NCBI RefSeq assembly: GCF_000150275.1 | Contig: NW_002060944.1 | Location: forward strand, 8,766,159 to 8,830,158 | Source: Trichoplax adhaerens | Taxonomy: Eukaryota > Animalia > Placozoa | DNA length: 64,000 nt | Direction of reading: 5' to 3' | Shown here: positions 1-64,000 of the stretch, one piece after another | How positions within the stretch are numbered: position 1 is the stretch's first letter | Layout of the letters: every line of letters begins with the position of its first letter | The notes under the pieces: model-generated | Told to the model about the DNA's origin: nothing | The model's database searches: none | What the model saw: only the letters and a program-made list of their open reading frames with translations | Made by a program: the position numbers and the translations under genes

Positions 1-93
1 ACGTTGGCGAAGTTTATCCCATCTTAAAACGTTAATAAATTGCTAATTCATAAAATAGCTAAATAAAAGAATATACTTGCATCTCTAACTTAC

Positions 94-315
94 AATAGAA
101 TATTTTTCCTGTGACATGACCATAGAAGCTCCTCTGGTAGCGATTTGCCATATAAGGATAATTTAGCTTCGAACAAATAAGCGAAGCAGCCGCGTTATTG
201 AAGGTATTTTGATCACAGACACTGCCCCAAGTTCCATTGTGATATATTTGCAGCGTTCCTGCCATTACATTATTGCCTTGAGAAGATGTAAGCCTAACAT
301 CGCCTTCAGTCGCTC
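94..315 (-). CDS. Gene D exon: N-terminal part of SRCR10 (domain split by an intron)
   Basis: [16 protein letters not shown]...LICSKLNY; the donor after 94 is at the same position as the intron in gene C SRCR10. Confidence 0.85.
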
Positions 316-3300
316 CTAAGTAAGCATAATGCTAGCTATTATTATACGCGTAAGTGCGCTCACGATACTTTATCGCAATGTTCTAATTATGATGCTAACT
401 AGCGTATAATATATGGCTACTACGAATAATTTCAAGTTCTTTTACAGTTCTAACTAACTTTCTGTACAAAATCTTCCATGAAATCCTGGAGGACAATAGC
501 AACTATATCCGTAAGGATGATCCAAACATGTGGCAGAATTACCACAAGGGTTATTATTGCATTCAATTTCTGTAATTTAAAAAGCAATGACATGTAATTA
601 TCGGTTATATTATAAACATTGAAGTCTATAGTGGCTTAGAAAATTTAATGTTTACAATGCAATATTATGAAATCTTCTTATCACAACGTTAATTAATCAC
701 GATCATCAGCACCTACTTATATAAGAACTAAGATTTGAGATCTACTGTAAAAATACTAAATTTATGCATCTACAACTTTTTAGCGGATATCAATCTAAAA
801 TTAATTGATATATTTACGAATAATGAATTGAGTAGTCTCTAAATAAAATATCTTTAGAGGTTATTTTCATGCCAAACTACTGTACTTCAAAAAAGCTTAG
901 CAGGTTTTATTACAGTGAAGAAAGATAGTGTGATCACGATAGGATCTTATAATTACTTAAATAAAGTTTCATACTATTTTTTAGAAATATTTTCAAATGG
1001 ATAGCAATCAACTCCCCAAATTTTATAATTGAAATTAATACACGTGACCAGCAATACTGCATAGTATATTGTTGTTCTGCAGCTATTTTTTTATTGGCTC
1101 ATCCTAATATATCATAAATTTAAATAATTTATATTTAAAAAGAAGCTTACTTGATGAACAATCTTGGCCAGTGTAGCCAACGATGCAGACACAAGAATAA
1201 ACGTTTATGTCGCCATTTACTAAAGTGCACTTTCCCCTTGAACTACAAGGGTTGTTTGAGCAAGCATCCGCTGTTATAAGAAATATAGAAGAAATTAGGA
1301 TGTAAGCTGTATAATAAACTGTACTATCCAGTGAAGATTAGCAAATGGGAAATACAAGAGTAGTGCAGTGAAATGGACTTGTAATTTATTAATAATTAGA
1401 TGACCAGTATGGCATAGCTAATATAGTCGGGATAATTTAGAATTACAGAGTACAGTTATTATATTGTATAAACTCCAGTATTATGTAAAAGTGATTATTC
1501 ACGATTGATTTTATAGAATATAAAATTGGTATCGTAGAAATAGAGTTTATTTCAGGGCTATTAAAATTCTATTCTTATTTAATTCTGTAAATATTAGAAA
1601 ATGCTGTAAGCTTTAGTAAGGTCACGTATCCTAGTAGATTCAGATTTTATTATAAATTAAGATATGATGATCTATTTAAAATATGATTAGGGTTGTAGAA
1701 GCATTTCTCATTGGATTTAGATTCGGCTTAACTGATACAAAGATTTCTTTACAAGGATAGTATAAAAGATACTGTTGCTTACAATACAATATAGTAAAAT
1801 TTTTGGTAAAACCTTTACTTTCTATATTTGGATTATTGGTCGCTAATAATTACTAATAGGTGTAGAAAACATTACTGAATTTCAGATGTGAGACTGTGAA
1901 TATTGGTAAGTACGGTAGTTTCAAATTCTTTTTAAGCTCTTCTTACAAATATATCAAATTACAAGCCGGAATATAAAATTAATATATGAGTGGAAATGTT
2001 ATAAATCAAATTTGCTGTTTTAATAAGCTGCTGTATCTGTATACTTGCTTTATAAATGCGATTCATTATTTAATGAGGCAGTGTACCTGTACATTCGAGT
2101 CCGACAACGTCATTGGATCTGCACTTAATGTTATCAAATGATTTAATTTTACAATTTGCCAGTCTTGCTTCACTTCCATTGCAGGTTACACTGTTTAGCC
2201 AATAGCTTCCAAAATATCTCCCATCCCATCGTCTCTGTTTTAATCCCCAAAATCCTAATTGCCTACAGGCAACCTGGGCTTCTCTGTAGGTGAATTCATA
2301 ATTGCATACAGCTCTCCATTTATTCTTGTGAAAAATTTCTAAGATGCGTGTTTTGCGTGAGTAATTCACCAAGCGTAAGGCCAAATCGCTTACTAACAAT
2401 TAGCAGAAGATAATTAATAAGTGCCTGTAAGCATCTACCATCCAAATGTATAACAAATTTCTCTATAATATATTAGGATATTTATATATAAATATTTATT
2501 TACTTGTGCATAAAATTCTTCGTAACGTATATGTATGGTACCGGTAGATATTATCTACGTTAGAAGATGATACAAGGCATTCTATTATAACATACCAGAT
2601 ACACAATGTTTCCCGGTGTACGGTGATTTACATCGACAAATATAGTTTGTAGAGTCTGCCAAACAAGTTCCTCCATTTTGACAGGGAGATCGTTGGCATA
2701 GCTTTGCTAGAATTTTGTTGTACGAGTGCAATAATTAGAGTTATACAGATTTAGTAAATAGAAATACTCCAGAAGTGTATAGCAATGCTAATGTGATAAC
2801 CTCATATATTAAAAAATTGAGGATGCTGTCATTCCTAACAATCATTAACTATAGTGTCATTTGTCACCGATCTCCTTAATTCTCCATTACTTACTGCTGC
2901 ATAATATGCTGACATCATTGGCATGAGAACAATCAGATTTCTCAATATTAACCGGTTGGATATTGCAAATTCTAACATTCGGCTCATTGCCACTACAGTT
3001 AGTCGACAAAACGACAGTGTTACTGCCTTTACCAAAATATGCATCGGGCATAAACTTAGAAAATGTAAGATTTAATTGACGGCAGAGAACCATCCCATCG
3101 TTAACAGTTACTAATTTACTACATAATGTTCCCCATTGCTTGTTATGATAAATTTCTACTCGGCCTTCGGTAGTATTAGCGCCATTGAGAAGACGAATAT
3201 CCCCTTGTATTGCCGGTCCTTCAAGTTTAGTAGGATCATAATCGAAACATATTAATCAAAGAAGTTCAGAATAATTCAAAATTTGATGAAACTTTTTGTC

Positions 3301-6300
3301 CATATTCTGGATCTAACCTATGTAGTTTTCACAAAGTATCCCAGAGTAAAATGGGGTGCATATGCATTTGTATCCATAAAACATATTTTTGCATGTTCCA
3401 CCATTGCTGCACGTTATTTCAGAACAAGGATTTAGTACTACAATAGATAAAATGAAATTAAAAAGGCTTGATTTTAATTTTAAATTGATTATTTGTTAAA
3501 GTATACCTAGTCTAGTATTGTATTGATAGAATAAGAGATACAAGTTACCATTAGCCGGTATTAGAAATATACTATTATCCTTTCAGCTTTAACACAAACT
3601 TACATTGATTGCATATAATAGCAACATCATTGCTATGATCACAAACAGACTCAGCACTACTTGAATCATATTGGCAAGCAGTTAACGATGGTTCATAACC
3701 AGAGCAACGAACATTAACCATGCCTATCTTTCCAGTTGCTGAGCTATGATAGGAGCTGATGTAGTTAGCTTTGGCCCAGCCAAGTTGCTGACAAATAACG
3801 TTGGCAGCACCTTCGGAGAAATTTCTATGGCACACGGTTTGCCAGCTGCCTTGCAAAAAAATTTCAACGCGACCAAAAGACCCATCACTATCAGCTTCTG
3901 GAATGATATTAGCGTCACCATTTTTAGGTGGACCTGTAAAATTAGGTTATTCTCAGTACGGTGATTCTAATTTGAATTAAATAAGTTAAATTTAATAACT
4001 AGACTTTATTTACTTATTGATTTACCGTGATAATATCACGTATACAAACACTAGGACAATATCGTTTAATTCTAATTATGAAAGCTTGTAGTACTTTTTA
4101 TCTTTATTGATGATATCATTAGTAAATCTGAAAATTAGCCGCTCAAAAATTACAGGTGCAATATTATTTTTATTGATTAATTATTAGTATTGATGTATTC
4201 GTAGGGAGTTTTTCAAACACTATTTAGTAAATAAAATGCACTATAGCTATCTTATTCGATTTATCGCGATGAAGAAGTTCACTAGTTAATATAATGTATC
4301 ATTTTGTAAATATCGTCAGCGGAATTATGCTTACTTTAAAGTTAAATTATATTTCTTAAAATGCAGTCCCGTAAATATTCGTAATCACTAATTTTCGCCA
4401 ATAACTACCGAATGATATTTCAATAGAAATAATTTTAAATTACAGTAAAAAAAATTTGTGGTTTGTGTTCAGTGAGAGATAAAGAAATAAGTGTAATGAA
4501 CATGACTAATAACCGTAAAGCTTATTTAAATAAATTACTGAATTGACAGAGTAGCTGGAATGCGACATTTAAAGCATTTCTTAAAAGATTAAATTAATTA
4601 AAACTATAGCCTTACCGTGTTCACAACGAATTCCATAGTAATTATTGAGACACTGGCATTTGTAATAATTGAATAAATTGGTGCATAAGCCACCGTTCAT
4701 GCAAGGTTCACTATCGCATGATGTTTTGTATTGACAGAGACGCCCATGATAGCCAGGATTACAATGACAAAATTGGGTATAGTAAGTTTTACCATCCACT
4801 TTGCTACTGTTATATCTGCATTGCCCATGAACACAGTTATTTGGCTTGCAAGGAGTGTCTGGAACGTACAAAAACGTATTTGTATTAGTTATTTCCAGAT
4901 TAATATCAATAATTTTAGTGTAACTTACTAGAACAGGCAATGTTTGTGCGACGGTAGCAATTAATCCCATTTAAGCCGTATGTAAATCTGCATTGGGAAA
5001 TTTTAGTTTCATTTCCAGTACATTTCATACTGTAGACCCAAACTTTATGTATGTTACTGCAACATTCTAATGAAAGAGATGTAACATAACCCAGTTGCCG
5101 GCAGATTACATTAGCTTCGGTAGTTGTTATTTTATCGTGGCAGAAGGCACCCCAGACTCCTTCGTGATAAACCAAGGGTGTTCCTTTCACAGTATGATTG
5201 ATATTTGATGTTGCGAATAATGCTAAAGTTCCATCTGCCCTAGGAACTAATACAGGATGATTAAAATAACGAATAGCGTGAGTTTGTTATTATTTTAAAT
5301 TCATAATAGGACTTGATAAAGCTGATGTTATGCGTAAAGGAGGACTGTGTAATGCAAGGATGGGTCGTAACTAACCAATAATGGCGATAACCTACACAAA
5401 TGATTTGATAAAATACTGTATGCAATATAAATGTTGTTAAAAGTTAGGTATTATTATTAAGAATAAATAGATTTAAAAAAAATTATGCTATCCTATAATT
5501 CGCCTGAAAGAGCTTGTGATAACACTTTGTTTGATTTACGCAAATATTTTGAATGAAAATAGGTTTCCTAATATTCAGTATTGGATGACGAAGGACATTA
5601 TTACGATGATAAAGATAGTAGGAAAATATCGTTACCGTAAGAAGAACTGATGTGAATTTAAGAAATTTATTTTACATTCTACGATAAGGGATATCTACCG
5701 ATAGGAGTTTGGCACTTGCTTCCAGTATAACCAGCTTTACAGTAGCACGTTGATCTATAAAAGGCATTGGATTTACAGTATCGGTTTATTCTGCTACACA
5801 GATTTACGGCTGTATTTCCGCAATTGCTGCCACCTAAGGATGATGAATAGTGTAAGTCAATGAAAGAATAGAAATGAAAATTTTATTTTCTATTTATTAG
5901 CTATCATGTAGCACGAAATTTCTACCAATTGACAGTTAAGGAAGAATTACCATAGCAAGAAATATATAAATCTTGCGAATGATTTTGGCAATATTGTGGC
6001 ACATTATACCAACCGCCGGTATTACATCCAGTAATTTTCCATTCCGTTCCTAAACATCTAACGTTATGTAACATGACGGGACCATAGCCGAAAAATGTTG
6101 TTCTTTGGCCTTGAGCGGAATAATATCCATAAAATCCTAGTAGTAGGCAGATTTTTTTGTAAGTTGTCGTGCTGAAACCAGAGCGGCAAAGTACTCCCCA
6201 CGTGCCGTTATGGTACACTTGCACTATTCCTTTACGTTCACTAGTACCAGCTAGTCGTAGATCTCCGTTCTTTGCAGTATTACCTAAATTGCATAATAGG

Positions 6301-9300
6301 GATGAAATGGGAGCATTAACTATTAAATTCGTGTTATCAAAATACTATCTTGCTTCTTACCTGAACAAGATAGAGTTAAGTCAAAAGAATGTCCACATCT
6401 GTCACGTCCATGTACTGCCAGAACTCGGTACGCGCAATCTTTAACTGAATTTTCATTACCTTTACAATTAAGTTGATACGAGGCAGCATTTGAGGCACTT
6501 TGACCAAATACAGGTGTGGGAAATGCATTTGCGAAAGTGTAACCCAATTGTTTACAAATAACTCTCATATCATTTAGAGATGTTTTGCGAAGGCACACGG
6601 CGGCCCAGTTATTATGTAAATAAATTTCCACGCGCCCGCTTAATGGATTAGTGCCGTTGACCAGACGCACTGAACCAAGTATTGGACCTTGAAATTTAGA
6701 ATGTTAAATTCTATTAGTAGTAAGCCTATTACGTTCTGGTCTAGTAAAAATATGTATTAGCATTAAACATTAACATTGAAGTTGTTTAATATCTTTGTTT
6801 ACGGCAGGATTATGTGACTGTTGAAGGAATATTTGACTGCTTTGGCTTAGAGGGTGAGAGTTTTTGCCAAAATCGTTTGAATGATAATGTACTGCACTGT
6901 ATATCGTAACTTTAATAACAAGTATTGTTTATAGCTCCTTTATTTACTGTCATGGTGAGCTGTTACAGTTTGAAAAAAAACCTACTCGATGAAAGTTGAC
7001 AGTTTTTGCCCTTAAACTGGTTTGTACATTTGCAATAATATCCGTAAAATCTAGGTAAACATGTGCCACCGTTAGTACACGGATTTGAAGAGCACGGCTT
7101 TATTGCTAGAGAAATTGATAAATAGCAAATGCTTGTAATTAATCATAAAAGTTTTTTTTGAATAAACATTAACTGATCGTAGATCTACTTTTTCTAATTA
7201 AATTGAGAATTGATAAATACTTGAACAGTAGACTCCGGCAAAATTGTGGAAGCAATATGAACTTCTAGACGGATTACTTCCAGGACAATCGAATATAGAT
7301 GACTCGTAACCTGTACATTTCATATTTATCATTCCAGATGATGTAGGTGGTATTCCAAACGCTGTACCTGTAGTAAAACTTGTAGCACCTGCAAAACCAG
7401 CTTGCTGGCACACTACATGAGCATCTAATAATGAAAAATAGGTAGAGCAGATAGGTCTCCACAGACCATTATAAAAATATTGAGGGCGTCCAACATTAAT
7501 ATCATTTGGTTTTCCTTCGACTATGACTAAGGTGCCGTTTAGTATTGGTCCTACAGTAAGTAAACGCATAAAGGTTACTGTAAGTTTTATTGGCAAACAT
7601 TACAGTTCGTAATCGTAGAATGGCATATTAAATAACTTATAAAGTGTTGATTACAGCATGCATATATACATTTATAAGAGTATTTAAATTTCTATGAGTG
7701 TAAAAGCCTTCGCTTTACCCTTTTCGCATGTTTTTCCCAGATAGCTCGAGGTACATTTACACGAAAACGATATTGAATCCAAAAGCGAACAAATACCTCG
7801 ATTTTGACACGGATTTGGGTTACAGAAATTCTTATACTGACAATAGTCGCCGTAAAAGCCCTCTATACATTGACATTGGATAGCAATCGCGCTAATCCCA
7901 GCGACAGAGGTTTGATTTAGAGAACAATTACCGTTATTAAGACATGGATTTGGCTGACAACTGGCATCTAACAATTCAATTAATGGAAAAATAAAGTTGA
8001 GCTGAATACGATTAAAATGCTACTTTAGCAATTGCATTATATAATTTTTAATCAGACTTACTGATACATTCAACTTTATAACGACTACAAATAGCAGCGT
8101 CCGTTTTATATCGATATAAGCAATCTGTTATCTTAGATTCATTGCCAAAGCAACGCATTGAGCTAACCCAAACTTTCAGTGACGGTATTCTACGGTCACA
8201 GCAATAAGATCTTCTATAACCAATAGTATAACCCAACTGCTTACAAGCAATTACAGCGATTCTTTCGCTATATTGGTAACAAACTGCTCCCCAAGCGCCA
8301 TTATGAAAAATTTCGATTGCTCCTTTCGCCGTATTAATTTGAGAGGCTTTAGAAACATTATACCAATCATATACACGAATTGAACTTTCCAGAGGTTGAG
8401 TGACTGTCGAAAATAGTTAGATATTGTGGTTATTTTCGTTTTTTATGTATTTATAGCGCTTTACTAGATTATAATATATACGGATTCCAAGATAAAGTCA
8501 TATATACTTAAGAAAGTAATTTCTGTGCAAAATGTAAGTTCTGTTTTAACCTATAAATAGCTTACTGATTGGAATTGTACAATTTTCGCCTGTGTAGCCA
8601 TATCTACATACACATTGACCAGCAGAAGGCAATCCTTGCGAACGGCGACAAATTTTGTTTTCAACGGCACAAAGTGCACTCTTGTCCGCACTACAAGAAA
8701 GTGCAGCTGTATAGGAATGAATTTTTTGTTTTGAGTAATTATTGCATTAGTAATTAGGTTAATTAGCCAATCGATAATGGCGATATAAAGTTCATTAGAC
8801 TAAGCTAATAATAGTAAAACCATATGACAGGTATAGCCACTCTTGTTGACAAATACACAGTAGACAATAATATTATACGACAGTATACCGGTATTACCTA
8901 TTACTATGAATGTAGTAGAATGAGAATTATCACTTTTATACAATGTTACTATAAGTATATACCTAAACTGAAATTATATCTAATAATAACTGTCGTGTTG
9001 CTAAAAAAGTATTGGCTTTAAATTTTGATTTTGAGGAATTTACAGTTTTCGCCATTAGTTTGACACAAATCTCCAATCTAACCGTTTATATGCCTGTTAC
9101 CGTCCAAGTACGAAATCCAGTCAATTCGCGAAATGCCTAGTCAATTCGCCTAGTCAGTTCGCGAAATGCCTAGTCAATTTGCGAAATGCCCAAATATATT
9201 TCTTTGCTGATTGTGTCAATTCGCTCGCGAAATTTGTAGCTTTTGAACAAATTTACGACATTCTAGCAGTATCTAGCTCATAACAATAACACATAGCACA

Positions 9301-12300
9301 TAACAACGGGGAAAGGCCGGGTACTGCCGGGAATGAACAGTAACTTCGGTCAATCCCGGGATTGGCCGGTTATTCCCGGAAATTCCCGGCCTATCTCAGG
9401 AATGAAAAACATGCCCATTCCAGTATAATGTATTGAAAGTCAAACCACTATCGTCACGGAAAGGTCTGTAAACTTCCCTTACAATAGATTAATCTGTTGC
9501 GAGCTATTAAAGTCTATATACTTACGTCTACATCTGACAAAGATTAAGTCATCATTGGGACATTCAAGAGAATGGTTGCCGATATTGACGTAATTGCACA
9601 TCAGAATTGATGATTCACGACCACTACATAGTATGTGATCTATTAAAGGACTGGTTTCTGCTGCTTTCGATTTATACTTGTGATACATGTTTACACCAAA
9701 GTAGCCTAATTGTCTACAAATGACATTAGAAACAAAGAGGTTGTAATAGTGTTGCAATTGCAGACAAATTCCTCCCCAAACACCATGGTAATAAACTTGA
9801 GCTAATCCGGAACCAGCTCTATCCGAGTCAATCAGGCGCACGTCTCCGTTTTGCTCAGGTCCTATAATAAATTTCGTACGCCTTTGCTTTTAGTATCTTG
9901 CGAAGTTTGCGATAGTAATCGATTGTAAGATATACGAAGGTTTCTGACTTCAATTTTGTTAGTTTCAGCTGTCGGAGTATCAGTACTTCGTGAGCTACTA
10001 CACGACAGCCTAGATAACGCCCTACAGTAACTGCTATACTCAATATAAATTGGAATCTCTAATAATGAATATGTTTTCTACTGAAGTCTTAGTATAATTT
10101 TCGGAAATGGCGCCTATTTCCGCTCATGCCTGTTCATTGAAATATTTATCACAATTACGAAAAACTTACCCTATTGCAAAGTTAAGTGTAAACTACAGAG
10201 GTAGTAGTCTGGCGGAAGCTGTTATTCATTTCAGAATATCAAGCAACCAAGTAAAGTAAAACTAAGCAATTTATTTGTTAAGTACGTACTATACTATAGT
10301 GCAACAAACTGGCATAAAATAAGACTAATTGTACCCAATGTAGCCTAAATTGATTAGGTACTATACGGAACAATATGTTATACTAATACTACTTATACAA
10401 CATTGTAGCCATTGAGCATCTTAACGTTAATAAGGAAGTGCGCTATTAATTGCAATGCACCATGCAAGCCTCAGCTAAAGCTTGTCGAATGATTATAGCA
10501 ATAAAATATTGGAAAAAGTTTGAACGCACTTATTTGACATCGATTTCCTTGAAAAGGAAACAAGCACTGGCAAAAGAAACCATTTTCCTTAGCTTTACAG
10601 ATTCCACGATTCATACATGGATTTCCATTACAAGGTGAATCTATTCGATATTGACAATCTATATTAGATATTTTATATGGGGTCTGAAATCTTGTATAAA
10701 CGTTCATTATTCCAATTCTATTCTGTAGCAAATGAAAAAAGTACCGCTATAGTACCATAGATTTTGTAATATTAGCCACTATCACAATTACTTTCTTAAA
10801 TGTTAAACTGATTATTCTATGCCATAGACTTTTACTGGTAAGCTTATAGCATACCTTCAAGACCCATCACCACTATAACTAATTAAAATCGTCACAGATA
10901 TGTGCGTGCACATAGCATGTTTTATAAGAATTGATAAACAATTTCCGTTTTAGAGTAAAAGTAACAGTTCAAAGCAATATTTTTGGTTTTATTGGAAATT
11001 ATACGTACATAATTTACACGTTTTGCCAGTGTATGGGAATGGACAATGGCAGGAATAATTGGCACCACCACCTTGGCTTATGCAAGTACCGTTATTACGA
11101 CAGGGATTAGATGAACAGGCAATGGCTATAATAATAAACAGTAGAACACGAAATTAATTTGAGTATTTAAGGCATAAAAAATTTATTAAGGATGCTCTAC
11201 ACTCGGGTTGTTAACATTTTCAAAAGGAGAAAGCTTTTATAGGAAAATTTCTCAATATTATAATCTTCCATTTACTTGTTTCACATCTTTCTCCGGAATA
11301 TGGATAGGGGCAGCTACAATTATACGCTTTATTGTTGTAGTAGGTCGTGCAAGTTCCACCATTTTGGCATGGATTTAGGCTTGAACATAATTGGGTATCT
11401 GGGTGAAGAAATGATGAAAGCGATTAAAAAAGTTGAAAAATAAACAACCTAATTAAAGACCTAAAATTTTAAGGTCTATCACAAGTAAATATGAAAAAAA
11501 TTCATGCATATTGAGATCATCATGAGTATAGTGTACTGTAGCTGATCATATGCTTTCTTATAACTGCTTTTTACGGAATACACAATAATGAGAACATTTT
11601 AGTAACTTTTTAAAATTTTATTTATCTTCAGTTCTTTGAGCATTGTAGTATATGTTTCATTATAGTTCGATTACTCATTTTGATACAACTACGTATGGAA
11701 GACATTTCTTGCAAATAAGACTGGCTCCGATTAATAAATTAAACCAAAGACTAAAGAAAGTAGCCTCATATTACATTACATACCTATTTGGCTACAATTT
11801 CTTCCAACTTTTCCAGAAGGACAAGAACAAGTATAAGTGGAGTAAGAGAAATAGTTGAAGCAAATTCCACTACTACATGGGTTGTCATTACACTTTCCGC
11901 GACATTTTTGATCTGCAGTAGTAAAATGTATGTCTTTTGTCAATCGTAGAAAATAATAATGAAATATTATATCTGTCTTCATGTATCTATCTTAAGTAGA
12001 TTGAAATAATTCTGCTAATTGATCTTCTCTGAAGTGAAATACTGTTTACCATCTTTAAGGACAACCATTACTGATGTAAAGTGATACGGTTCACTTGATA
12101 TTTATTTTAGTGTATTTTGCTTACTTGGAATATTTAATGCTGCATTATAGCATTCTTGATTATGAACTCCTTTAGGGCAGGAACAAATGTAGCCTGGCCC
12201 TGCAGTAGTAGCAAAGGAAACACATTTGCCAACTCGGCATGGATTACTAAGACAAGGACTATTCCTGCCATTACTATCTGGTAAATATCGGTGAAGAGAC

Positions 12301-13497
12301 AGAGAATTAAACAATAAAAAAAATAATTATACTGGTAAAATTAGAGTAAATTGAGAATATATAGCCTATTAGCGATACGATTACAAATATAATTATATCA
12401 CGATATAAAATAGCAGTGTCAATGATAAGACAAATAAATACGAGATATTATTACGATTATTTGTCTGCAGGAAAAAATCAATTTTTGAGAGAGTTTCAAG
12501 ATTAAGCTTTAAAATAACTTACCAGTTTGGCAATTTTCGCCGGAGTAACCCGCATAACAAAGACAAATTTGGGTCCCATTTATAGTTACACAAGCACCCT
12601 GTATACAAACTTTATCCGCACAGGTTTGAACTAGACCATTTTCAAAAAGTAGAGATGAATCATGCAATTTGATATTTTAATTCTAGAAGAGGATCTTGCT
12701 ACGAAAAATGATAGTTTTAACTAGTAAAATAATTATAGCCTCTTATAATGCTATAAATTGTTTTTTTATGTCTCTTTGTATAGAAAAAACATGAGTGATG
12801 CCTATACTTTTGGTTAGATATACATACTCGTGTAAGTTTAACCGATGATATAATTTTTTGTATCTTAAATTATCCAGTATTAAAGGTACTTTCCGGATGC
12901 TATTTGGTGGAATTTATTTGTAAATCAAATAACAATGTGATACACCCAATACTTTACTTTTAGTGAGAAATGTTCTTTTTAATACTATAGATTTAATTTT
13001 GTCTCTATCACCATTGCGCTATCTGAGAATACCGTAATCAATAGGAAGTTAGGCTAGCTAGCTAGTAGAAGTCCGATAATAAGCTGCCTTATGTTATGAA
13101 ATCACTTGAATATTTGCATATATTTTACAAAAGAGAATTAATTATTGGAAATAATTTGTAATTGTAGAATAGATTTAGTTGTTAAAAGTGGTTGAGATCA
13201 GCTGACAGTTACGAACTTAAATATATAAGTACACTAAATTTATTGTTAATTAAATAAGTCAGCTATAGTTATATGTATTACATCGATTAGAATAAAAAAA
13301 TTTAAGTAAAACGATCAGCTAGCTATGTTATTCAGCTCCTGTGATGAAATTTAACGAAGTAAATACTTGAAATATTAATGGAACTTACTTGTAGGTGAGA
13401 TATCAGCAGTTTTACGTCCTATTTCAGCGTATGTTAAAGAAGCGAACTGCAGTACCAACAGATAATGCAATAAATAAAAATTATTATTAGATTTTAT
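94..13497 (-). CDS. Gene D (3' end runs off the left edge): EGF/SRCR multidomain receptor, paralogue of gene C; signal peptide, 6 EGF, at least 10 SRCR interleaved with EGF
   Basis: Hand-assembled GT-AG exons, phase 1-1 after the first: 13389-13446(13497), 12523-12630, 12125-12277, 11784-11912, 11276-11398, 11009-11125, 10530-10640, 9526-9861, 8566-8706, 8062-8403, 7719-7967, 7221-7550, 6986-7105, 6361-6687, 5951-6283, 5699-5833, 4929-5246, 4616-4858, 3604-3933, 3318-3437, 2895-3218, 2596-2706, 2087-2392, 1151-1270, 459-569, 94-315. All internal exon lengths are multiples of 3 and the order is colinear with gene C. The start codon is unresolved (ATA at 13495-13497). Confidence 0.85.
2087..2392 (-). 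CDS. Gene D exon: SRCR9
   Basis: [13 protein letters not shown]...ACRQLGF...[17 protein letters not shown]...VGLECT, AG/GT flanked. Confidence 0.9.
2895..3218 (-). CDS. Gene D exon: SRCR8
   Basis: [15 protein letters not shown]...CRQLNL...CSGNE...[12 protein letters not shown]. Confidence 0.9.
3604..3933 (-). CDS. Gene D exon: SRCR7
   Basis: [15 protein letters not shown]...ICQQLGW...[13 protein letters not shown]...[11 protein letters not shown]. Confidence 0.9.
4616..4858 (-). CDS. Gene D exon: two tandem EGF-like domains
   Basis: [11 protein letters not shown]...[12 protein letters not shown] and [12 protein letters not shown]...[12 protein letters not shown]. Confidence 0.9.
4929..5246 (-). 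CDS. Gene D exon: SRCR6
   Basis: [11 protein letters not shown]...ICRQLGY...ECC...[13 protein letters not shown]. Confidence 0.9.
5951..6283 (-). CDS. Gene D exon: SRCR5
   Basis: [12 protein letters not shown]...LGF...[13 protein letters not shown]...[12 protein letters not shown]. Confidence 0.9.
6361..6687 (-). CDS. Gene D exon: SRCR4
   Basis: [26 protein letters not shown]...ICKQLGY...[11 protein letters not shown]. Confidence 0.92.
7221..7550 (-). CDS. Gene D exon: SRCR3
   Basis: [15 protein letters not shown]...[11 protein letters not shown]...[11 protein letters not shown]...AGVYC. Confidence 0.9.
7719..7967 (-). CDS. Gene D exon: two tandem EGF-like domains
   Basis: [12 protein letters not shown]...[12 protein letters not shown] and [12 protein letters not shown]...[12 protein letters not shown]. 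Confidence 0.9.
8062..8403 (-). CDS. Gene D exon: SRCR2
   Basis: [15 protein letters not shown]...ACKQLGY...SYCC...[13 protein letters not shown]. Confidence 0.9.
9098..9410. mobile_element. Probable non-autonomous transposon (MITE-like) remnant in a gene D intron
   Basis: Starts with TACCGTCCAAGTACG (also at 43209). Contains about 3.5 tandem copies of TAGTCAATTCGCGAAATGCC (9118-9190) and a GC-rich CCGGGAAT/ATTCCCGG inverted-motif patch (about 9307-9405). The intron is 819 bp against 365 bp for the paralogous intron in gene C. Confidence 0.5.
9118..9190. repeat. Short tandem repeat, unit about 20 bp (TAGTCAATTCGCGAAATGCC)
   Basis: Direct reading: three near-full copies plus one truncated copy. 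Confidence 0.85.
9526..9861 (-). CDS. Gene D exon: SRCR1
   Basis: [26 protein letters not shown]...ICRQLGY...[11 protein letters not shown]. Confidence 0.9.
10530..12630 (-). CDS. Gene D: six N-terminal single-EGF exons
   Basis: Exons 12523-12630, 12125-12277, 11784-11912, 11276-11398, 11009-11125 and 10530-10640 each have EGF-type Cys spacing and phase 1-1 borders. Confidence 0.88.
13389..13497 (-). CDS. Gene D putative signal-peptide exon ([36 protein letters not shown])
   Basis: Hydrophobic stretch in frame with a phase-1 GTAAGT donor; ATA where gene C has ATG; an internal CAG acceptor at 13447-13448 is an alternative. Confidence 0.6.
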
Positions 13498-18040: not shown

Positions 18041-18139
18041 ACTTTATTACTAAAAGTATTCAAATAATTTATTTATCTGTTGAGGTTAATTTTGCTTTAC
18101 ATGCATTATAATTTCTAACTGTACAATGCTAGAATCGAA

Positions 18140-20340: not shown

Positions 20341-20429
20341 TTAGAGATCATCGTCTTCTCCGCGATAGACAGGATTGTCTAGTTCTTCTGATTTAGACTT
20401 CAGAATACTTTTATTCTGAGATCTTTGTC
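20341..20429 (-). CDS. Gene C terminal exon: cytoplasmic tail with NPxY ([28 protein letters not shown])
   Basis: Manual translation; AG acceptor at 20430-20431, TAA at 20341-20343; phase matches exon 20541-20584. Confidence 0.85.
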
Positions 20430-46300: not shown

Positions 46301-46540
46301 ATATACTGAACTAAGACAGATTTTTACATCAATAGCTTACATTTAATTTGCTATAAAGAGGCAAGATAAGTTTGAAGTGGTAGATTCACAAATGTAGGCT
46401 TTGCTTATTAATAAGTCTCTAGATATAAAAATGTACTATCGCTAACAGTTGCGTGAAAAAGCTACCAGATCGAATCGTCATTTTATAATTCAATTTTTGA
46501 GAAGGAGATTTAAATGAGTTATGAAAATAAAATGATAATT

Positions 46541-54400: not shown

Positions 54401-55686
54401 AGTCGAATTTGAGAGACAACAGTGAGTAGTGAGTTACTGAATAAAGCTGTTTTGTAGATTATAGTACAGCGTATCTACTGGTGGTGAGCCTTTTAAGCTC
54501 ACTGCACAGTGTACAGTACAGTACCGTATTACCGATGTTGACGTAATTATGGTATCGTCGTACAGTAAAAGTATGGTGCAGCATTGTTTGTTTATGTTAT
54601 GCTGTGCATACCTGAGCTACCGTCGATGCAAAGAACAGTCAAGGCATACAGCAATAATTTCTATATACTTTGCCATCGAAAAATCTGAGAGAATTAGTAA
54701 AACGTGCGGTACACTACGGTACAAAATTCGGCATTATGGAGTAAAATATGTTGACGAATTTTGTACCATAGTGTTATTTATTAATTACATTGGTAGCGTT
54801 GCATATCGCAAAATTGATCAGTAACGGATTCGTTTTAAAACTAGGGCGAATTGTATCGGCTAGATTGAATCCGACTTGATTACAATCCGTGAAATATGAT
54901 ACTTTGCATTACACTGCTGTATAGGGTTGGTGTTAGGACTAACTAAGGTTACCAACATTGTCATTCAGAAAACAATTTGAACAATTTGAAGCGTATTCCT
55001 AACACTCATGCTAAACCCTAGTTCTAATCGCAATCCTAGCTCTAACCCTAGCCCTCCGTAATTTGGGGGCAAGAAAACTGTTTTACAGACAATAGCCTAT
55101 AAAGATGGTAAGTTCATTGGCAAATAGACTGACTTGAATAATTATGTATCAAAAATTTAAAGTTCAATCAGTTCGTGATAGTAACGTAATGAAGAATACA
55201 AGTTTGTTTCAATTTAAATACAAAGTACTCGTGATAAGGTTTGATTCGTATCAGAATCGATATAACAATTGCATTGAGCTGGTATAATAAAGATTATCAT
55301 TCAAACTAATGTAATAATTCTTCTTTTCTGTAATCTTGGCAATTTGAAATGAACAACTGAATATACATCTAGACGAATATATTCGTATAGCCATGATAAA
55401 GCCTACCTACGCGTCCATACTGGCATACTATAAACAAGGGTACAATTTCCTTCATTGTTACAAATTTCACAATAACAGGTAAAATATAGTCAAGTAGACA
55501 AATATACAATAAATTAGTAGATCGGTTGATAAAATAATCAATTTAATGAAAGAATTCTAAAATTACTAAGCGATAAATTCCTATTACTGTTATGAAACAA
55601 ATTATTTCTTTTACTAGAAGACGTAGGATTAACAGAATATTTTATTGATAGTTTAATAACGTAATTTTAGAGCTGAACCATGCAAT

Positions 55687-56515
55687 CTATACATTTTCTT
55701 CTACATCATCGGAATCAAGCATAGGATCATAATCGTCGCCTTCCACCATATCATCTAAATCTATACTTCCGCTATCTTCACTGTCACTCGCGTTATCAGT
55801 ACTTAATTGTTCAGCAACCCTCGAAATTGAAATAATAATCGTAATTGTCATTCCTAATAAGGAGACACTTTAGCACATTTCTGCAGTCCATTTTGCCCAA
55901 AATAGGATTTGAAAAGTGAAACCTGTTTTTAATCAGGGGGGGACGCTTACCCAAATGGAGGCGATAGCGCAGTACTTTACGGTACTTAATTAGTCATCAT
56001 TGATTATATATTTAAATTATTGATGACCAATTGACCAGCCAATAGATATCTTGTAACATTTACGAGAACCGTGTCCCTTTAAGTCGTAACTAATTCCCGA
56101 CTAAGGAATGTTGAATATTGTTTGTATGATTATGATTGTAACTGATTACTTAATATTAATGGTGGATGGCAATGATTGTTAATGAAAATATTCGTTTACC
56201 GTAGGATTGTCAGTTTAACATTATATATATGTATGTACTATGTAGAAGGGAATATTAGAGTATAATCTGTCCTAAGATATGTACGACTGATCGCTAGTAT
56301 CCTAGTTGGTAACTACGTTTAGCTTACTTTAGAATTTATGATTCATAGTAGAGAGACCACCAACCGCTCTGCGAAGCATATAAAATGGCGGTGTAGTCAA
56401 GAATACTTTAGTCTTGTTTTGTTGCAGTTCTTGGTTCTATTGAAATCGTGGACTAACCACTTAGAAGCTGATTGTTTAGCTGAAGTAATCATTGAACCAG
56501 AAGTCGTAAGTTTCC
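55687..56515 (-). other. Possible two-exon coding remnant or alternative 3' end encoding an acidic peptide
   Basis: 56458-56515 (phase 1-2, KLTTSGSMITSAKQSASKW) joins in phase to 55687-55819 (VAEQLSTDNASDSEDSGSIDLDDMVEGDDYDPMLDSDDVEENV*); the second acceptor is a weak GAG. Confidence 0.35.
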
Positions 56516-57569: not shown

Positions 57570-57679
57570 TTATAGATCGTTATCTTGTACGTCAAAGTCT
57601 TGATTTTCGTACCTTTCATCATAATTAGGATTTCCGAATGATTGTGACTCCATCGATTTCAATTTAAATGCAAATTTTC
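57570..57679 (-). CDS. Gene A terminal exon (KFAFKLKSMESQSFGNPNYDERYENQDFDVQDNDL*)
   Basis: Manual translation; homologous in position and C-terminus to the last exons of B and C. Confidence 0.85.
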
Positions 57680-60600
57680 CTACAAGTAATTATCAGAACA
57701 GACCATAACCGATGAAATTAGCCGTAAAATCAACATATGCGGTGGTTACATTCAATTTTTACAAACACTTTTCGATTTAAATTATTTCTTCTACGGTATA
57801 TTATGACTTACCGGTCGAACTACCAGCCTTGCCGAATGACAAACTTTTACGCTGAAATGTTCTATTTTACACAAAATATTTAGTTTTAACAATAAGTCAT
57901 TTGACCAACTGATGATATTAAGTCTCAATCACTCATTAGGTAGATACATTACCCGAGCAACCTCTTAAACTACGCAAAATTTTTTGCTTTATTTCTGTAA
58001 TATTCAGTTACAATATTGATTACCCTTTTCGTTTCAGGAATACAAAGGCCGCTATAAGGATCAAGATACCGATAACGCACCCTATCGCAATTCCGACGTA
58101 ACTTCCGACTTATAATGCAAAAAAATTATTTTATTATGATATCACTCCTTAGATAATCTGGTATTTGGTTAAGGCAAAGTTTGCTCACCAATTCTGATAT
58201 AATAGTATCTCTTTATAGAGAATAAACTTTGCAACTCTTACTACTCTTGTACTGTAGGTCGAAATATTTACTGAAACAAACTTAGCATAATACTGTAGTT
58301 ATCGTACCATTCTGAGTGACTGCACTTTGACAGTTATCCCCACCGAATCCGCTTGAACAGCTAAAAATAAATAGAAAGAAAGTGACGTTCACAAGATTTC
58401 AAGTCGTTATAACAGAATAATAATTAAACTTCAGAGCTGGTAGCATACGTTAGAAAAAATCCTAGCAACATCATGACCGTTTATGAAATTAAGGTTTTAT
58501 AACAAGAAATCTACTATGTTGTATCTAAAATAATGTTTTAATTAAGGTTATTTCATCGTAATGCGTATTTCTAAATTATATTATGGTAATAATATTGTAT
58601 AAATTTAAATATTTAATTGGATAATTAAACGAACGCTGCTACTATTCGTTATAAAGGATATTTGTATTACCTGCAGCTTGGTTTGTTGTTATTCATGCTG
58701 CACTGACCATTATTGCTGCAGTATTGTTGCGAGCAAACAAAACCTGAATATTGCATCATGAAGATCAAAAATGTTAAGGGTGCCAGTTAATAAACCTATC
58801 GCAAAAGTAATAAAATCTTCTTTGAGGACATTAATATACTGAAAGTCTCAATAGCATACTTATATTGGATAGCGATGTTTGCAAAACTTGATTGTTGATA
58901 GGATTGCGCACAAGACATGAATAAGCACCGTTATCAGTTATAGATAATGGACTAAAGGTGAGGTATGATGTAATTTTGGATTTCAAATTGCTAATGACAT
59001 CAGCAACATTCGTCGTGTTTCCAGGTATAAGGGTGACATTATTTTTCATCCAAGTTATAGAGGGTAGGGGGCGTCCAGCAGCTTGACATTGTAATCTCGC
59101 ATAGGAACCGACTTGAAAGGTAGTAGTATTCGCGGATATGGATACAATTGCGACTGGTATTGCTAGAAAGCAATGTGATACCATAGTATACAGAAAATTA
59201 GTAAAGAGATTCATGTATTCAATCATTACTTAGATATGCAGTTATTACGAACGTGCTAGTTGAGTTTCGCAGTTTTTTCCAGCATATAGAGGATCGCAAC
59301 TAAAATATAAGATTGACGGTTTATGTTAATGACATGGTAGAATTTTCTAATCGTAATTAAAATCTGAGTGAATTTAATGATTTAATGGTTATTAGACACG
59401 ACTTTGCTGCAATATTTTTATCGTTAGCTACTCTGAATAGTAAAGAAAATTTTACTATAAAATTGAATATACTCCTAGGTCAGGTACTATAGCCTTTAGA
59501 TTAGTTCTGGACAAAGCTGTCAACGAAAGCACTTTAATTGAGTAGATTTTAAATAAATGCTATAGCTTCACTCAATAGTACCTGCATATGGCTCCAGAAC
59601 TAGTTTGATTGCATTCGCCTTGGGAATTACAGAATACAGATGAACACGTAAACTCTGCAAGTAAATAATCATTAATATTTGTCTAGAATAAGCCATTGCT
59701 AACAAAATAAATTATAACATACGCATAAATACAAGAGACTTTCCATTTACTCAGCGTTCTCAAACCTTGTACAACATTTTATGCGTGAAAAACAAAGCAA
59801 ATTTCATTTTACTTACGTAAGCTTACGGTAGTGCTGTTTATAGTTTTCTTGTTAATCTCATCCTTTGCTTGACAGTAATAAGCGCCTGCGTCACTTGGAA
59901 TGAGGTTCGCAATTGCCAATATTATAGTAGTAGTGTCATTGGAATTGTCAGCTGCAAGGAAGACATTAATTCGACCTCCGGATATTACTTGTTTGCCGTT
60001 ATGGTACCAATTGATCGTAGGTCTTGGTCTCGCTTTCGATTGGCATTGCAGACCAGCAGAAGATCCAATCAGGTATTGAGATGCATTTATTTTTGCTGCT
60101 ACCAAACTGAGAGGGAGATCTATAGCAGATGTAAGTATTTGTTACATTTTTTGCATCTATAGCATTTTTATTTATTTTTCAAATTTCGAAAACATCGATT
60201 CCTAGTTTCTTATGGAAATGAAAGTGCAACATCATAACAGTAACTCTGAAGGAAATTGAATCTAAACTTAAAAAATGCCTACTTGGTAGCACAGTCTCAC
60301 AGCGATTTCCCACGATTCCGAAATTGCAACTACAATCGGAGCAGAATCAAATATAAAATTGTTAAATGCCAACTTGAAATTACTACGTTTATCTAACTTG
60401 TATTAGTCATATTATACATTGTTTCAGTAACACCAATGTCGTATACGTTGCAGCTGTTTGTATCATAGTATAGAGTAAAAATCAGAATTGTGAATTACAC
60501 AATAACAGAATTGATACTGGTAGGCTCTATATTAACTATAAATATAATTTTACGAAGTTATAAAGATTCTGTACATGAAGCCTAGATTTACTTTAGACTT

Positions 60601-63600
60601 TGTAATGATTTATATTGTACTATTGTACAATTTAATGGCTGCATCTGCATGAAGAGAAAGTCTCGATTTTAGGTTTACCATAGTATTATGCTATGATTGT
60701 GACAGGTACTGATCGTGACGACCGTGAAGAAATTTACCTGCATTGGAGAGTATTAGTATTGGCAATAGTACTACAAATCCCATTATTATTGCAAAATCCT
60801 GTTGAACACACCATTCCTATTTAAAATAAGATTGAATAAATATACCAAGTAATAAGTATTTGCATCAGCTCATGTGCGTATTGTGCATTTACAAATTAAA
60901 TTTCTGATTCAACTTACTAATAGTCATCGTTAAACTTTGAATTGTTGCTCCGTTATAATTACCAACGCACTTATAGCCCCCAGTATTATCCAGCATTAAG
61001 CTACTAATGACCAGAATAGATTGAGCAAGTGTAGAATTCGATAGCGATGTCGAATAGGTAATTACGACATTGCCACCGCTACTAATTGGCGCACCATTTT
61101 TAGTCCATGTAAGGGCTGACGTAGGTCGTGATACTGCACTGCATTTTAACGCAACATACACGCCTTGAACGTACGTCGAGGTATTGCTTTGGATATTCAC
61201 TGTACTCAATGGAATATCTTTTTTTTCAAAAATTAGGACAGGATAGTGCAAATTTATGTTAGATAATTTAATTTATTTATACATAGCGTAAGATACATTA
61301 TGCATCTATGAAGAAATTAAACTATCATTGCAGAATTTATTCAATAAGTTTAATAATTTATTTTTTCTTACCGTTTAAACTAGAATTCTACGAACTATAA
61401 TTAAGATAATGTTCTATCATGCAGAGAAATAAACAACTTACCTGATAGCTTCGTCTCACAGTTAGATCCAGTATAGTGCAAATTGCAGCTACATTATATT
61501 GGTTGGAAAGTAAAAAAATGAATCAATTGCAATAATTAAACGATTCTGCCAAGAACTTCATCACTAAAGAAATGCTAGTGACATATTCAGCATATCCTAA
61601 CTTAGCCTTAGTGGAAAATACTGTTGCGACTTAATCTTAGAAGAAAATGATAAGGCTCGTGACAAAGGAAGTTTAGTCAGAAGTAAAATACGGCGATAAA
61701 ATATGCATAGTATTTCTAGCTCTTATCTATTTTCATTGTGGACTCAAAATCCAAACGAATAATTTAAGGAGTTTAACAATAAAAATTTTAGAACATTATA
61801 CCAAGATTATCTGATTTTGTATTAGAGAAATTTTACCTGCACTGAATCAAATCACTACCAGTGACACTACTGCATATCCCATGACCTTTACAGAATCCAG
61901 TCGAGCATACCATCCCTATCAGAATTGGGATTAATAATAATTGAAATTTGAAATATTTGTATCAACTGCTCTGACAGGACAACGAACAAAAAGAATGAAA
62001 ATTTTTCGCTAATTATTAAACAAATAACTAATTTAAGAGACAGGGCATCCTTAATTAATGATTCACCAATCATGGTGTATGATAGCTAGACTATTTTTGT
62101 CTGCTATACCTCCAAAGTAGAATAATAACTTACTTATGGCGATGACAGAACTCTGTTTAGTTATGGAGCCGTCCCCATAATTTCCTACACACTTATAATC
62201 TCCGTTGTTCGCTAGGGCCAAACTCTTGAAAATTAAGATAGACTGTACGAGAGTAGGGTTGCTAGGTAGGTTAGAATTAGTAATAATAACATTGCCACCA
62301 TTCGTTATTTGAGCACCATTCTTAGTCCATGTCAGTACTGTGGAAGGGCGAGAAGTTGCTTGGCATGTCAAGCCAACCATTGCACCATAAATATAAGTTG
62401 TCGTATTGCTTTGGGCTGTGACACTATTTAGAGGGATGTCTGAAGTGAAGTAAAACAAACGTAAGTTTACCCATCGCACCTACACAGTCAAATTATCGCT
62501 GTTTTATGCATTACGGTTGTAACAATTTGATCTTTAGTAACTCTCGATCATAACATCATATTTCCAAATTTACTTAGAAAATAATATAGAGATCTATTAA
62601 ATTAGCTTCGTAGGTAGCAATACTTACCAGGTAGCCTAGTTTCGCACTGAAGCCCCGTATAGTATAAGTTGCAACTATTTATAAGAAATATTAAAATAAG
62701 TTATTATAATAGCTGATTGTCTATCAACAACGTTAGAAAATGACTCACTCAATTCTTTAAGTGTCTGTAAAGAACAAACGCTGAATTTATTCGGCATAAA
62801 CATTAACCGATTTACCTGCATAGGAGTGCATTGTTTTCATTATTTGCAGGACTACATATTCCGTTATTATTACAGTATTCTGGAGAACAAGTCATTTCTA
62901 TTTGATGCATCCACAACATTTGAAGTAGAATATTTGAGGAAAAGTGTAATGCAAATCCATGTACAGGTATAATTATAAGTTAATGAAGCTCAATGTTAGC
63001 AAGATTAATGATGCATTATTAAAAATTCTTAACAGTATAGAATATATAACTACATGTGCTGCACATTATGTAAGTATTTATTTATAACAGCATTAAAATT
63101 AATGGAAGCAACTTACTTATAGTAAATGGAAGGCTCTGCACTATTACACCATTTTGAGTGCGGTTACTAATGCACTTATAATCTCCGTTATTATTGAGTG
63201 TTAACCCATTTATGATAAGATTTGATTCCGCTAATGTAAAATTTGAAAATGGAATGGAATAAGTGATCATAATGTTTCCTCCGGCTGTGATTGGTACATC
63301 ATTTTTAGACCACGAAAGTCCCGATATAGGACGTGATTTCACTGCGCAAGACAAGATGATGTGCGCTCCAAAAACGTAGGAAGAAGTGTTGCTGATAACA
63401 ATCACATCGTTTATTGGGATGTCTAGAATGTTTTAAAAGCAGTATTTATCATGGTTAACTAGACTTCGTATACCATAATCACAGCTAACAAGATAGACCT
63501 GTTTCTGGATTGGATAACGACTTTTATAATTTAAGCTTAATTCTACAGGCGACTATGACACAAGTGCATAGGTAACATACCGGTAAGCTTGGTTTCGCAA

Positions 63601-63907
63601 TTAGCTCCTGTAAAGTATCGATCGCAACTATTAAACAGAAATAGAAGAAAGTATGTTTAGTACGGTTTTTATTGCTTAGTGAATTAATATTTCCAATTAG
63701 TGTCAATGTTGTTTAAAAATTGTGTAACCATTCATGCGTTCAGTATTGTTGGTACCAGGGTGCACGTGAAATACAGATTAATCCTACTCTATCATGTTAT
63801 TTCGAAATAAGGAAACTTTCGTATTTACCTGCATTGCAGTAAATCACCATTATTTACGTTACTACATACACCATTGCCACTACAAAATTCCGCTGAGCAT
63901 ACCATTT
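57570..63907 (-). CDS. Gene A (5' end off the right edge): (Ig-EGF)n-TM receptor with NPxY tail; 5 Ig and 6 split EGF in the window
   Basis: Canonical, phase-compatible exons 63829-63907, 63581-63627, 63117-63422, 62816-62897, 62628-62674, 62134-62439, 61837-61915, 61442-61488, 60918-61217, 60738-60816, 60283-60329, 59817-60119, 59582-59654, 59253-59299, 58860-59162, 58671-58743, 58308-58360, 58024-58108, 57812-57861, 57570-57679; no lesion seen. Confidence 0.9.
58024..58108 (-). CDS. Gene A transmembrane exon (GSYVGIAIGCVIGILILIAAFVFLKRKG)
   Basis: 85-nt phase 1-2 exon; hydrophobic helix followed by a basic cluster. Confidence 0.92.
58860..59162 (-). CDS. Gene A exon: membrane-proximal Ig-like domain
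   Basis: [18 protein letters not shown]...DNGAYSC. Confidence 0.92.
59817..60119 (-). CDS. Gene A exon: Ig-like domain
   Basis: LQCQSKARPRPTINWYHNG...DAGAYYC. Confidence 0.92.
60918..61217 (-). CDS. Gene A exon: Ig-like domain
   Basis: LKCSAVSRPTSALTWTKNG...NTGGYKC. Confidence 0.9.
62134..62439 (-). CDS. Gene A exon: Ig-like domain
   Basis: LTCQATSRPSTVLTWTKNG...NNGDYKC. Confidence 0.9.
63117..63422 (-). CDS. Gene A exon: Ig-like domain
   Basis: [18 protein letters not shown]...NNGDYKC. Confidence 0.9.
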
Positions 63908-64000
63908 CTATAAAGAGTATTATTACCGCAATAGTATTAGAAAATTTTCGTAAAACTACGTGTAAGATCAAAAAATATTAAGCTTATACGCGTATACAGT

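Follow-up and report, generated by a model that had tools for sequence, protein, structure and literature searches.

A tandem array of giant SRCR-EGF-Ig receptor genes in Trichoplax adhaerens, probably an ancient family of endocytic scavenger receptors under slow birth-and-death

The stretch of 64,000 nucleotides (nt) analysed here, termed the window, is taken from the Trichoplax adhaerens assembly GCF_000150275.1 (contig NW_002060944.1, positions 8,766,159 to 8,830,158) and carries receptor genes built from SRCR, EGF and Ig domains. We consider it probable (about 0.7) that the window is the middle of an ancient tandem array of about 165 kb, which codes for giant SRCR-EGF-Ig receptors that would act as endocytic scavengers, and that this array evolves by slow birth-and-death. 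Coordinates follow the numbering of the window; negative positions lie beyond its left edge and positions above 64000 beyond its right edge, and transcription runs from high to low numbers. The gene letters A to E are our own; the letters A to D of a first-pass annotation of the window cannot be mapped onto them with certainty.

The analysis covered one haplotype and was extended to a region of 204 kb (the window, 40 kb of left flank and 100 kb of right flank), while genome-wide profile scans covered the 105.6-Mb assembly. Pfam and database searches were run exon by exon, and joined gene models served for reading-frame tests only. The window is AT-rich (30-37% GC), intron-rich animal DNA and is not human. 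Pfam assigns SRCR, EGF and Ig domains to open frames of the minus strand, and the SRCR domain (PF00530) scores 53.8-161.8 bits in the six exons tested, compared to a gathering cut-off of 26.1. When profiles were built from the window's own exons, all matches within the window (24/24 SRCR and 14/14 Ig exons) were on the minus strand. The same holds for the 204 kb, where protein and DNA profiles match 27 Ig, 56 SRCR and 8 transmembrane (TM) exons, all of them on the minus strand. The whole array comprises four full genes (E, D, A and B), a short copy (C) and further relics (Table 1). Five elements are located within the window: one complete gene, two edge-cut genes, one disabled copy and one relic. 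The first-pass annotation had described a tandem receptor cluster, arranged head-to-tail on the minus strand, with at least five copies at different stages of decay, one of them a decayed 3' relic at about 18140-19060, and had expected the cluster to continue past both edges. This description stands in each of these points. Its proposal to count copies by the 85-nt TM exon was followed with a DNA profile, which detected five good copies in the 204 kb along with three further matches that are weak or belong to relics.

Table 1. Coordinates of the array elements and of selected features (window numbering).
Feature	Position	Strand	Remarks
Gene E	~141.7-121.8 kb	minus	beyond right edge; 13 SRCR, 4 Ig
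Gene D (right gene)	82666-57570	minus	3' part 64000-57570 in window; 13 SRCR, 8 Ig
Gene D, 3' part	57570..64000	minus	Ig4-Ig8 with split EGFs, TM exon 58108-58024, tail exon with NPNY, end ...DNDL
Faint remnant of a first half-EGF exon	55416..55480	minus	4 kb upstream of C; stop just upstream; last Cys reads Trp; weak (E 0.04)
Short copy C	51434-46541	minus	disabled, 5'-truncated Ig-EGF-TM copy
C, acceptor loss	50248..50249	minus	AG to AT before second half-EGF exon 50247-50201
C, in-frame TAA in second Ig exon	49966..49968	minus	CAA (Gln) in relatives; TAA flagged independently by own-genome scan
C, donor loss	48848..48849	minus	GT to TT after third Ig exon 49152-48850
C, acceptor loss	48114..48115	minus	AG to AC before fourth Ig exon 48113-47811
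C, Ig-fold Trp to Leu in last Ig	48001..48003	minus	TGG to TTG; Trp kept in three intact paralogs (alignment)
C, fifth Cys to Arg in last EGF	47288..47290	minus	structural residue
Gene A	41411-20339	minus	complete; 13 SRCR, 5 Ig
Gene A, TM exon	20737..20821	minus	85 nt, phase 1 in, phase 2 out; TM DNA profile E 8e-23
Relic after A	19060-18130	minus	decayed 3' end
Gene B (left gene)	12630 to ~-11550	minus	12630-1 in window; 13 SRCR, 5 Ig
Gene B, 5' part	1..12630	minus	six N-terminal EGF exons, SRCR1 to first half of SRCR10, interleaved EGF
Second relic, after B	~-20.7 to -22.0 kb	minus	genome 8744160-8745460; larger than relic after A

The full genes share one domain order: six or seven N-terminal EGF domains, 13 SRCR domains interleaved with EGF domains, four to eight cassettes consisting of an Ig and a split EGF domain, a TM segment and a short tail. 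The predicted proteins have about 3200-3900 residues and are of a giant single-pass membrane type. The 13 SRCR domains are found in the same order in all five cases compared, i.e. the four full genes and an environmental contig (L017, see below). Twelve of the 13 are each contained in a single exon, two of these sharing one 768-nt exon with an EGF domain, and SRCR10 is split by an intron in 4/4 full genes. According to the translations, the cysteine number of the SRCR domains is mixed, some having eight (with a Cys-Cys pair) and others six. Some EGF domains are of the calcium-binding type (D-I-N/D-E-C motif). The number of Ig domains differs from gene to gene (Table 1).

Exon models were obtained by phase-aware picking of tight exons and were cross-checked among paralogs. 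At the 3' end of gene A, which was read base by base, a 303-nt Ig exon (phase 1-1) is found together with a 73-nt first half-EGF exon coding for four cysteines (phase 1-2), a last second half-EGF exon of 53 nt coding for two cysteines (phase 2-1) and the 85-nt TM exon (phase 1-2). In the remaining cassettes, the second half-EGF exon has 47 nt, and Ig exons have 303 or 306 nt. The cassette EGF domains are split by the intron between the fourth and fifth cysteine. This direct reading reproduces the exon sizes that had been listed before (85-nt TM, 47/53-nt half-EGF and 303/306-nt Ig exons). Whole EGF exons of A, B, D and E are delimited by tight AG...GT pairs in phase 1-1 and have lengths common to paralogs (111, 120, 123, 126, 129 and 153 nt). 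In A, B and D, all SRCR and Ig exons are bounded by phase-1 sites at conserved positions, with a donor that is very often GTAAGT. Off-frame translations of paralogous exons were also seen to match one another, and splice signals in this region are weak. A frameshift detector found no case inside the window; it detected a frameshift only in the relic downstream of B.

Gene A is intact from its first EGF exon to its stop codon. When joined, its 51 canonical AG/GT exons yield 9511 nt (3168 codons), and the only stop is the terminal one. The product has seven N-terminal EGF domains, 13 SRCR domains, about 23 whole EGF domains, five Ig plus split-EGF cassettes, the TM segment and a tail of about 45 residues. 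Since the first EGF exon begins in phase 1, an exon coding for the signal peptide must lie upstream of 41411. A search for it in the region upstream of 41411 resulted only in weak, non-conserved candidates. The designation of one copy as intact by the first-pass annotation is thus correct for the stretch between the first EGF exon and the stop codon, while the signal-peptide exon was not found. An ATG open reading frame (ORF) at 41414-41482 (minus strand) that codes for 23 hydrophobic residues resembles a signal peptide, but its reading frame does not fit, and it overlaps with the region of the 3' splice site. It either occurs by chance in AT-rich intron sequence or is the trace of a former first exon. 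At the exon/intron boundary of SRCR2 in gene A, there is a tandem duplication of about 125 nt (36281-36536, minus strand; 75-76% identity), which takes in the final nucleotides of the SRCR2 exon and a large part of the intron that precedes the double-EGF exon.

The copies are ancient and evolve under constraint. When all SRCR and Ig exons were aligned by codons, every pair of genes showed a synonymous divergence (dS) of 1.3-3.0, i.e. saturated. The ratio of nonsynonymous to synonymous divergence (dN/dS) is 0.09-0.25 for every pair, in SRCR and Ig domains alike. At the amino acid level, A, B and D are 51-61% identical to one another, compared to 35-38% for A and E. Upon self-comparison of the DNA, similarity is confined to exons (60-85%), with nothing recent, and intron similarity among the full paralogs is not detectable. 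DNA identity between copies amounts to 60-75%, with no pair exceeding 75% over an exon; the copies are therefore not assembly artefacts, as had already been assumed in the first-pass annotation.

When the 283-residue SRCR-EGF-SRCR exon was used as query of a word search, two close relatives were retrieved, both carried on genomic contigs; the other matches, at 30-36% identity, were to DMBT1, SSC5D and proteins of a similar kind. A word search with the last Ig exon gave no match, an outcome that, with the length window and word index used, carries no information on absence. Both contigs share the architecture of the array genes. L015, a contig from run SRR30664517, codes for SRCR10-13 and five Ig domains, while L017, a contig from sample SAMN08714533, codes for 13 SRCR domains and the first Ig domain. 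Sample SAMN08714533 is named in two marine-biofilm metagenome studies, and L017 is therefore probably from a wild placozoan. Trees were computed with FastTree and IQ-TREE. The Ig domains fall into five positional classes, in four of which L015 is paired with gene A (support 0.78-0.97). Type-3 Ig domains occur once each in A and B, four times in D and twice in C. In a concatenation of 969 residues, L015 is sister to A with an ultrafast bootstrap (UFBoot) of 99, and C is placed next to D (63), within a clade of B and D (79). The dS between A and L015 is about 1.5 and is thus saturated. As L015 is sister to A and yet separated from it by a saturated dS, the split between A and B/D predates this divergence, and the duplications are old.

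The first-pass annotation had taken the cluster to be rapidly turning over and had proposed per-domain trees and dN/dS as a check. Both were carried out, and they do not support this claim: they indicate purifying selection on old paralogs, and the saturated dS, the low dN/dS, the dissimilar introns, the fixed layout of the 13 SRCR domains and the pairing of L015 with A all stand against rapid turnover. The sequences thus point to a slowly evolving family of scavenger receptors, with ancient copies under purifying selection, which is the opposite of rapid turnover. Change is concentrated in the Ig-EGF cassettes and at the 3' ends, the 13-SRCR array being rigid.

This bears on the possibility that the array is a complex for self/non-self (allorecognition) or cell-cell recognition, with variable ectodomains that bind between individuals or cells and with pseudogenes as by-products of diversifying turnover. 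Several features would fit: the genes stand in tandem and are accompanied by a pseudogene and relics, the receptor is of the single-pass type with Ig and EGF domains in its ectodomain, the number of Ig cassettes varies, and the paralogs share only 51-61% of their residues. Sponge aggregation receptors are likewise made of many SRCR domains. Alr of Hydractinia and FuHC of Botryllus are, as the array, clustered genes for single-pass Ig/EGF receptors accompanied by pseudogenes. However, these systems lack SRCR arrays and have as their defining features an extreme allelic polymorphism and the genetics of fusion and rejection, whereas the paralogs of the array are under purifying selection. The dN/dS values are low in Ig as well as SRCR domains, and no region with an excess of replacements is seen at the paralog level. 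The paralog-level ratio thus gives no hint of an allorecognition-type diversification, even though the defining feature of allorecognition is allelic polymorphism, which is a different level. Furthermore, the paralogs are ancient, and one of them has an ortholog in another lineage. Neither placozoan allorecognition genes nor the genetic control of placozoan fusion/rejection is reported in the searchable literature. A recognition complex of this kind is considered improbable. The domain make-up and the NPxY-type tails point to an endocytic scavenger receptor rather than to allorecognition.

SRCR arrays are the ligand-binding modules of scavenger and pattern-recognition proteins. In the array genes, a single TM segment is followed by a tail of about 45 residues with an internalisation-type motif, which is NPVY in A, NPNY in D, NPSF in C and DPIY in E, followed in each case by an acidic end. 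Genes with PID/PTB domains are present in the genome. We propose that the SRCR array would bind microbial, polyanionic or debris ligands, and that the NPxY tail would recruit PTB-domain adaptors, leading to clathrin-mediated uptake. The proteins would thus be endocytic scavenger or pattern-recognition receptors, and the paralogs would cover different ligands.

The very long ectodomains, rich in EGF and Ig domains and including EGF domains of the calcium-binding type, together with the short cytoplasmic tail, are also reminiscent of adhesion proteins. The receptors might accordingly be mainly extracellular-matrix or adhesion molecules, which serve in the cohesion of the epithelium or in attachment to the substrate and not in uptake. 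SRCR arrays are, however, typical of ligand-scavenging proteins, and the top matches outside the family are DMBT1 and SSC5D. Several tails also keep NPxY-type uptake motifs, although NPxY is used by integrin-type adhesion receptors, too. We regard a primarily adhesive role as very unlikely.

Among known proteins, those close to the array genes include the group B SRCR proteins of vertebrates and echinoderms (DMBT1/gp-340, SSC5D, WC1 and CD163), which also have long arrays of SRCR domains and are the best matches outside the family. The hallmark of group B is an SRCR domain that is encoded by a single exon and has eight cysteines; the corresponding figures for the array are mixed (see above). 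The genes for WC1 likewise form a tandem multigene family, and CD163 functions in endocytosis. The array genes differ from these in that their SRCR domains are interleaved with EGF domains, that they contain Ig plus split-EGF cassettes, that six- and eight-cysteine SRCR domains are mixed, and that one SRCR domain is split. They also lack CUB and ZP domains. A non-bilaterian counterpart is the aggregation receptor of the sponge Geodia, a single-pass protein with about 14 SRCR domains, a short tail and membrane-proximal SCR/sushi modules, which functions in cell aggregation. Where the sponge protein has SCR/sushi modules next to the membrane, the array genes have Ig-EGF cassettes.

Within the same phylum, an expanded set of scavenger receptors has been described for Trichoplax sp. 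H2 (Kamm et al. 2019, PMC6321704). Its "SRCR +EGF" class lists TrispH2_002800, 2801, 2803 and 2804 (Dataset S3A of PMC6321704), and these TM proteins with SRCR and EGF domains are described as a placozoan-specific expansion. The family of the array was probably already listed in this class. The near-consecutive numbers would suit a tandem array of four SRCR genes that is interrupted by one gene devoid of SRCR domains. Kamm et al. (PMC6321704) give only locus tags and domain classes, and the terms "tandem" and "pseudogene" each occur 0 times in the main text. The present analysis adds the arrangement, the exons, the pseudogene and the relics, the variation of the Ig cassettes and the evolutionary rates. 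Because the tandem arrangement, the pseudogenes and the exon structure are not covered by Kamm et al. (PMC6321704), what is new here is a well-resolved example of an already known kind of locus.

Tandem paralogs that are accompanied by pseudogenes and fragments, as expected for birth-and-death evolution, are found in the array in the form of four full genes, one disabled copy, at least two 3'-end relics and one isolated TM-like match. The relic after A corresponds to the last 1 kb of gene A (19880-20890); in the alignment, 615/947 positions are identical and 158 columns are gaps. It takes in the TM exon with the intron that precedes it, the tail exon and the 3' flank. In its TM exon, the acceptor is gone, 2 nt are deleted and in-frame stops are present, and the match to the TM DNA profile is only weak (E 0.002). 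The tail exon is shorter by 56 nt, which include the NPxY motif and the stop codon. The likeness to A extends through non-coding DNA, while introns of the full paralogs are dissimilar; therefore, the relic arose from A after the paralogs had separated. The second relic is located about 9 kb downstream of B and contains an Ig exon of the last type, which carries a frameshift and a TGA, as well as remnants of two half-EGF exons and a TM-like exon (E 1e-11). Thus, a partial copy of a 3' end trails each of three genes: C follows D, and a relic each follows A and B. This fits unequal crossing-over in the repetitive 3' halves. We suggest that slow birth-and-death would proceed through unequal crossing-over within and between these repetitive halves. 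Such exchange would explain the variable number of Ig-EGF cassettes (e.g. the type-3 Ig domain, which is single in A and B but fourfold in D), the 5'-truncated Ig-EGF-TM copy C after gene D, and the small dead 3'-end relics after A and B.

In copy C, a second half-EGF exon is followed by four Ig plus split-EGF cassettes (Ig types 3, 3, 4 and 5), a TM exon (47086-47002) and a tail exon ending in ...NPSFGTQDKDL. The first-pass annotation had distinguished a multiply disabled copy and a near-intact one. The former exists and is almost certainly C, while the term near-intact fits neither of the two edge-cut genes, which are free of defects. Four independent disabling changes are seen in C (an in-frame TAA and the loss of three splice dinucleotides), and, in addition, a structural cysteine and the tryptophan of an Ig fold are lost (Table 1). 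No SRCR exon was found upstream of C in exon and DNA-profile scans, and a relaxed search for decayed SRCR/Ig exons between 51.5 and 57.5 kb yielded no significant match. A signal-peptide exon or start upstream of C was also not found. In the spacer between D and C, there is a 54-codon ORF (55687-55851, minus strand) that codes for a very acidic, Asp/Glu/Ser-rich sequence without similarity to receptor exons.

When compared exon by exon with gene D, 14/14 exons of C (1848 nt) hold length and frame. The two differ at 35% of Ig-exon sites, and their dN/dS is 0.25. In a simple neutral simulation with random hits at 10% of sites in the homologous exons of D, a mean of 6.6 stops was obtained, and the probability of at most one stop was 0.0065. 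A single stop despite 35% divergence, together with a dN/dS of 0.25, shows that selection maintained C through most of its past and that its inactivation is recent. The conserved exons and the low dN/dS might even be taken to indicate that C is alive, as a working receptor or decoy with Ig and EGF domains only, and that the lesions are a strain polymorphism, an assembly error or bypassed by cryptic splicing. The TM and tail exons of C are open and the NPSF motif is present, and for the lost donor of the third Ig exon there is a possible cryptic substitute, an in-phase GT that is located 18 nt upstream. In the list of Kamm et al. (PMC6321704), TrispH2_002802 is omitted between the listed tags, which would fit a gene model devoid of SRCR domains; this is only a guess. 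A living copy would, however, have to cope with all of the disabling changes and with the two lost structural residues. For its last Ig exon, no substitute phase-1 acceptor is in range, and upstream of C there is only the degenerate EGF remnant, with neither a signal-peptide exon nor a start. It is thus unlikely that C is functional.

It is tempting to combine these observations into a scenario in which the array is a placozoan complex for the recognition of self/non-self or of symbionts, the 3'-end copies reflect a working unequal exchange that generates different stalk lengths and Ig-only decoys, and C is the latest casualty. We consider this scenario the least probable of those discussed.

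Several points weigh against the proposal of an ancient array of endocytic scavenger receptors. Ligand binding and endocytosis are deduced from the kinds of domain present and from a motif of four residues, and apart from this motif the tails of the paralogs are poorly conserved. Expression, the exact splice junctions and the first exon are predicted from DNA only. Orthology is based on two short contigs from uncharacterised samples, and the placement of L017 has UFBoot values of 73, 67 and 42. The pairwise dN/dS values are averages, which are compatible with positive selection at a few surface sites or with a high allelic polymorphism. Finally, the equation of the present genes with the TrispH2_002800-2804 tags is a guess from their near-consecutive numbering.

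The immune repertoire of placozoans, which belong to the simplest animals, has become known mostly in the form of domain-count lists. The locus provides a worked example, with a rigid 13-SRCR array that would bind ligands, an Ig-EGF stalk that changes in length, and 3' ends that have repeatedly been duplicated and lost. It also corrects the tempting reading as fast-evolving allorecognition genes, the copies being old and constrained. The gene models are targets for binding, localisation and uptake studies on how Trichoplax handles bacteria and endosymbionts.

The two edge-cut genes are intact over their readable part. For gene B, 25/25 exons in the window are canonical AG/GT exons in phase 1-1 and are stop-free. 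Sequence of the left flank adds three more SRCR domains, five Ig-EGF cassettes and the TM segment; a tail exon of B was looked for but not found. In SRCR9 of gene B (2073-2384), the Cys-Cys pair is lost, the protein having RRWD where A, D and E keep YYCC. Of A, B and D, gene B is on the longest branch in the trees, and its SRCR1 and SRCR9 domains show 34-43% identity to A/D and 37-45% to L017. The sixth N-terminal EGF exon is present in A and D but missing from B and E (10530-11125 compared to 39358-39471), so variation in domain number extends to the 5' end. A 20-nt tandem repeat (9111-9190) with 4.4 copies and 72% matches is located in an intron of gene B.

For gene D, 16/16 exons in the window are canonical and open. 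Its 5' part (EGF domains, 13 SRCR domains and Ig1-3) is located beyond the right edge at 64125-82666. In gene E, the genome scan detected one in-frame TAA in the third Ig exon (124048-124338), and the acceptor is not at the expected place; this may be a lesion, or the exon boundary may be placed differently. Upstream of gene E, a weak TM-exon-like match (147056-147153, E 5e-05), with Ig and SRCR exons being absent nearby, may be a relic.

When the profile of the last Ig exon was run over the whole genome, it retrieved four strong copies, the relic downstream of B, gene E and a member on another contig (C1397:1058258). This member is adjacent to SRCR exons and belongs to an SRCR and Ig gene of the same general build on the plus strand (C1397:1047239-1058557), the last Ig of which scores 83 bits, compared to 95 for gene E. 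Weaker SRCR/Ig neighbours are carried by contigs C1378 and C1408.

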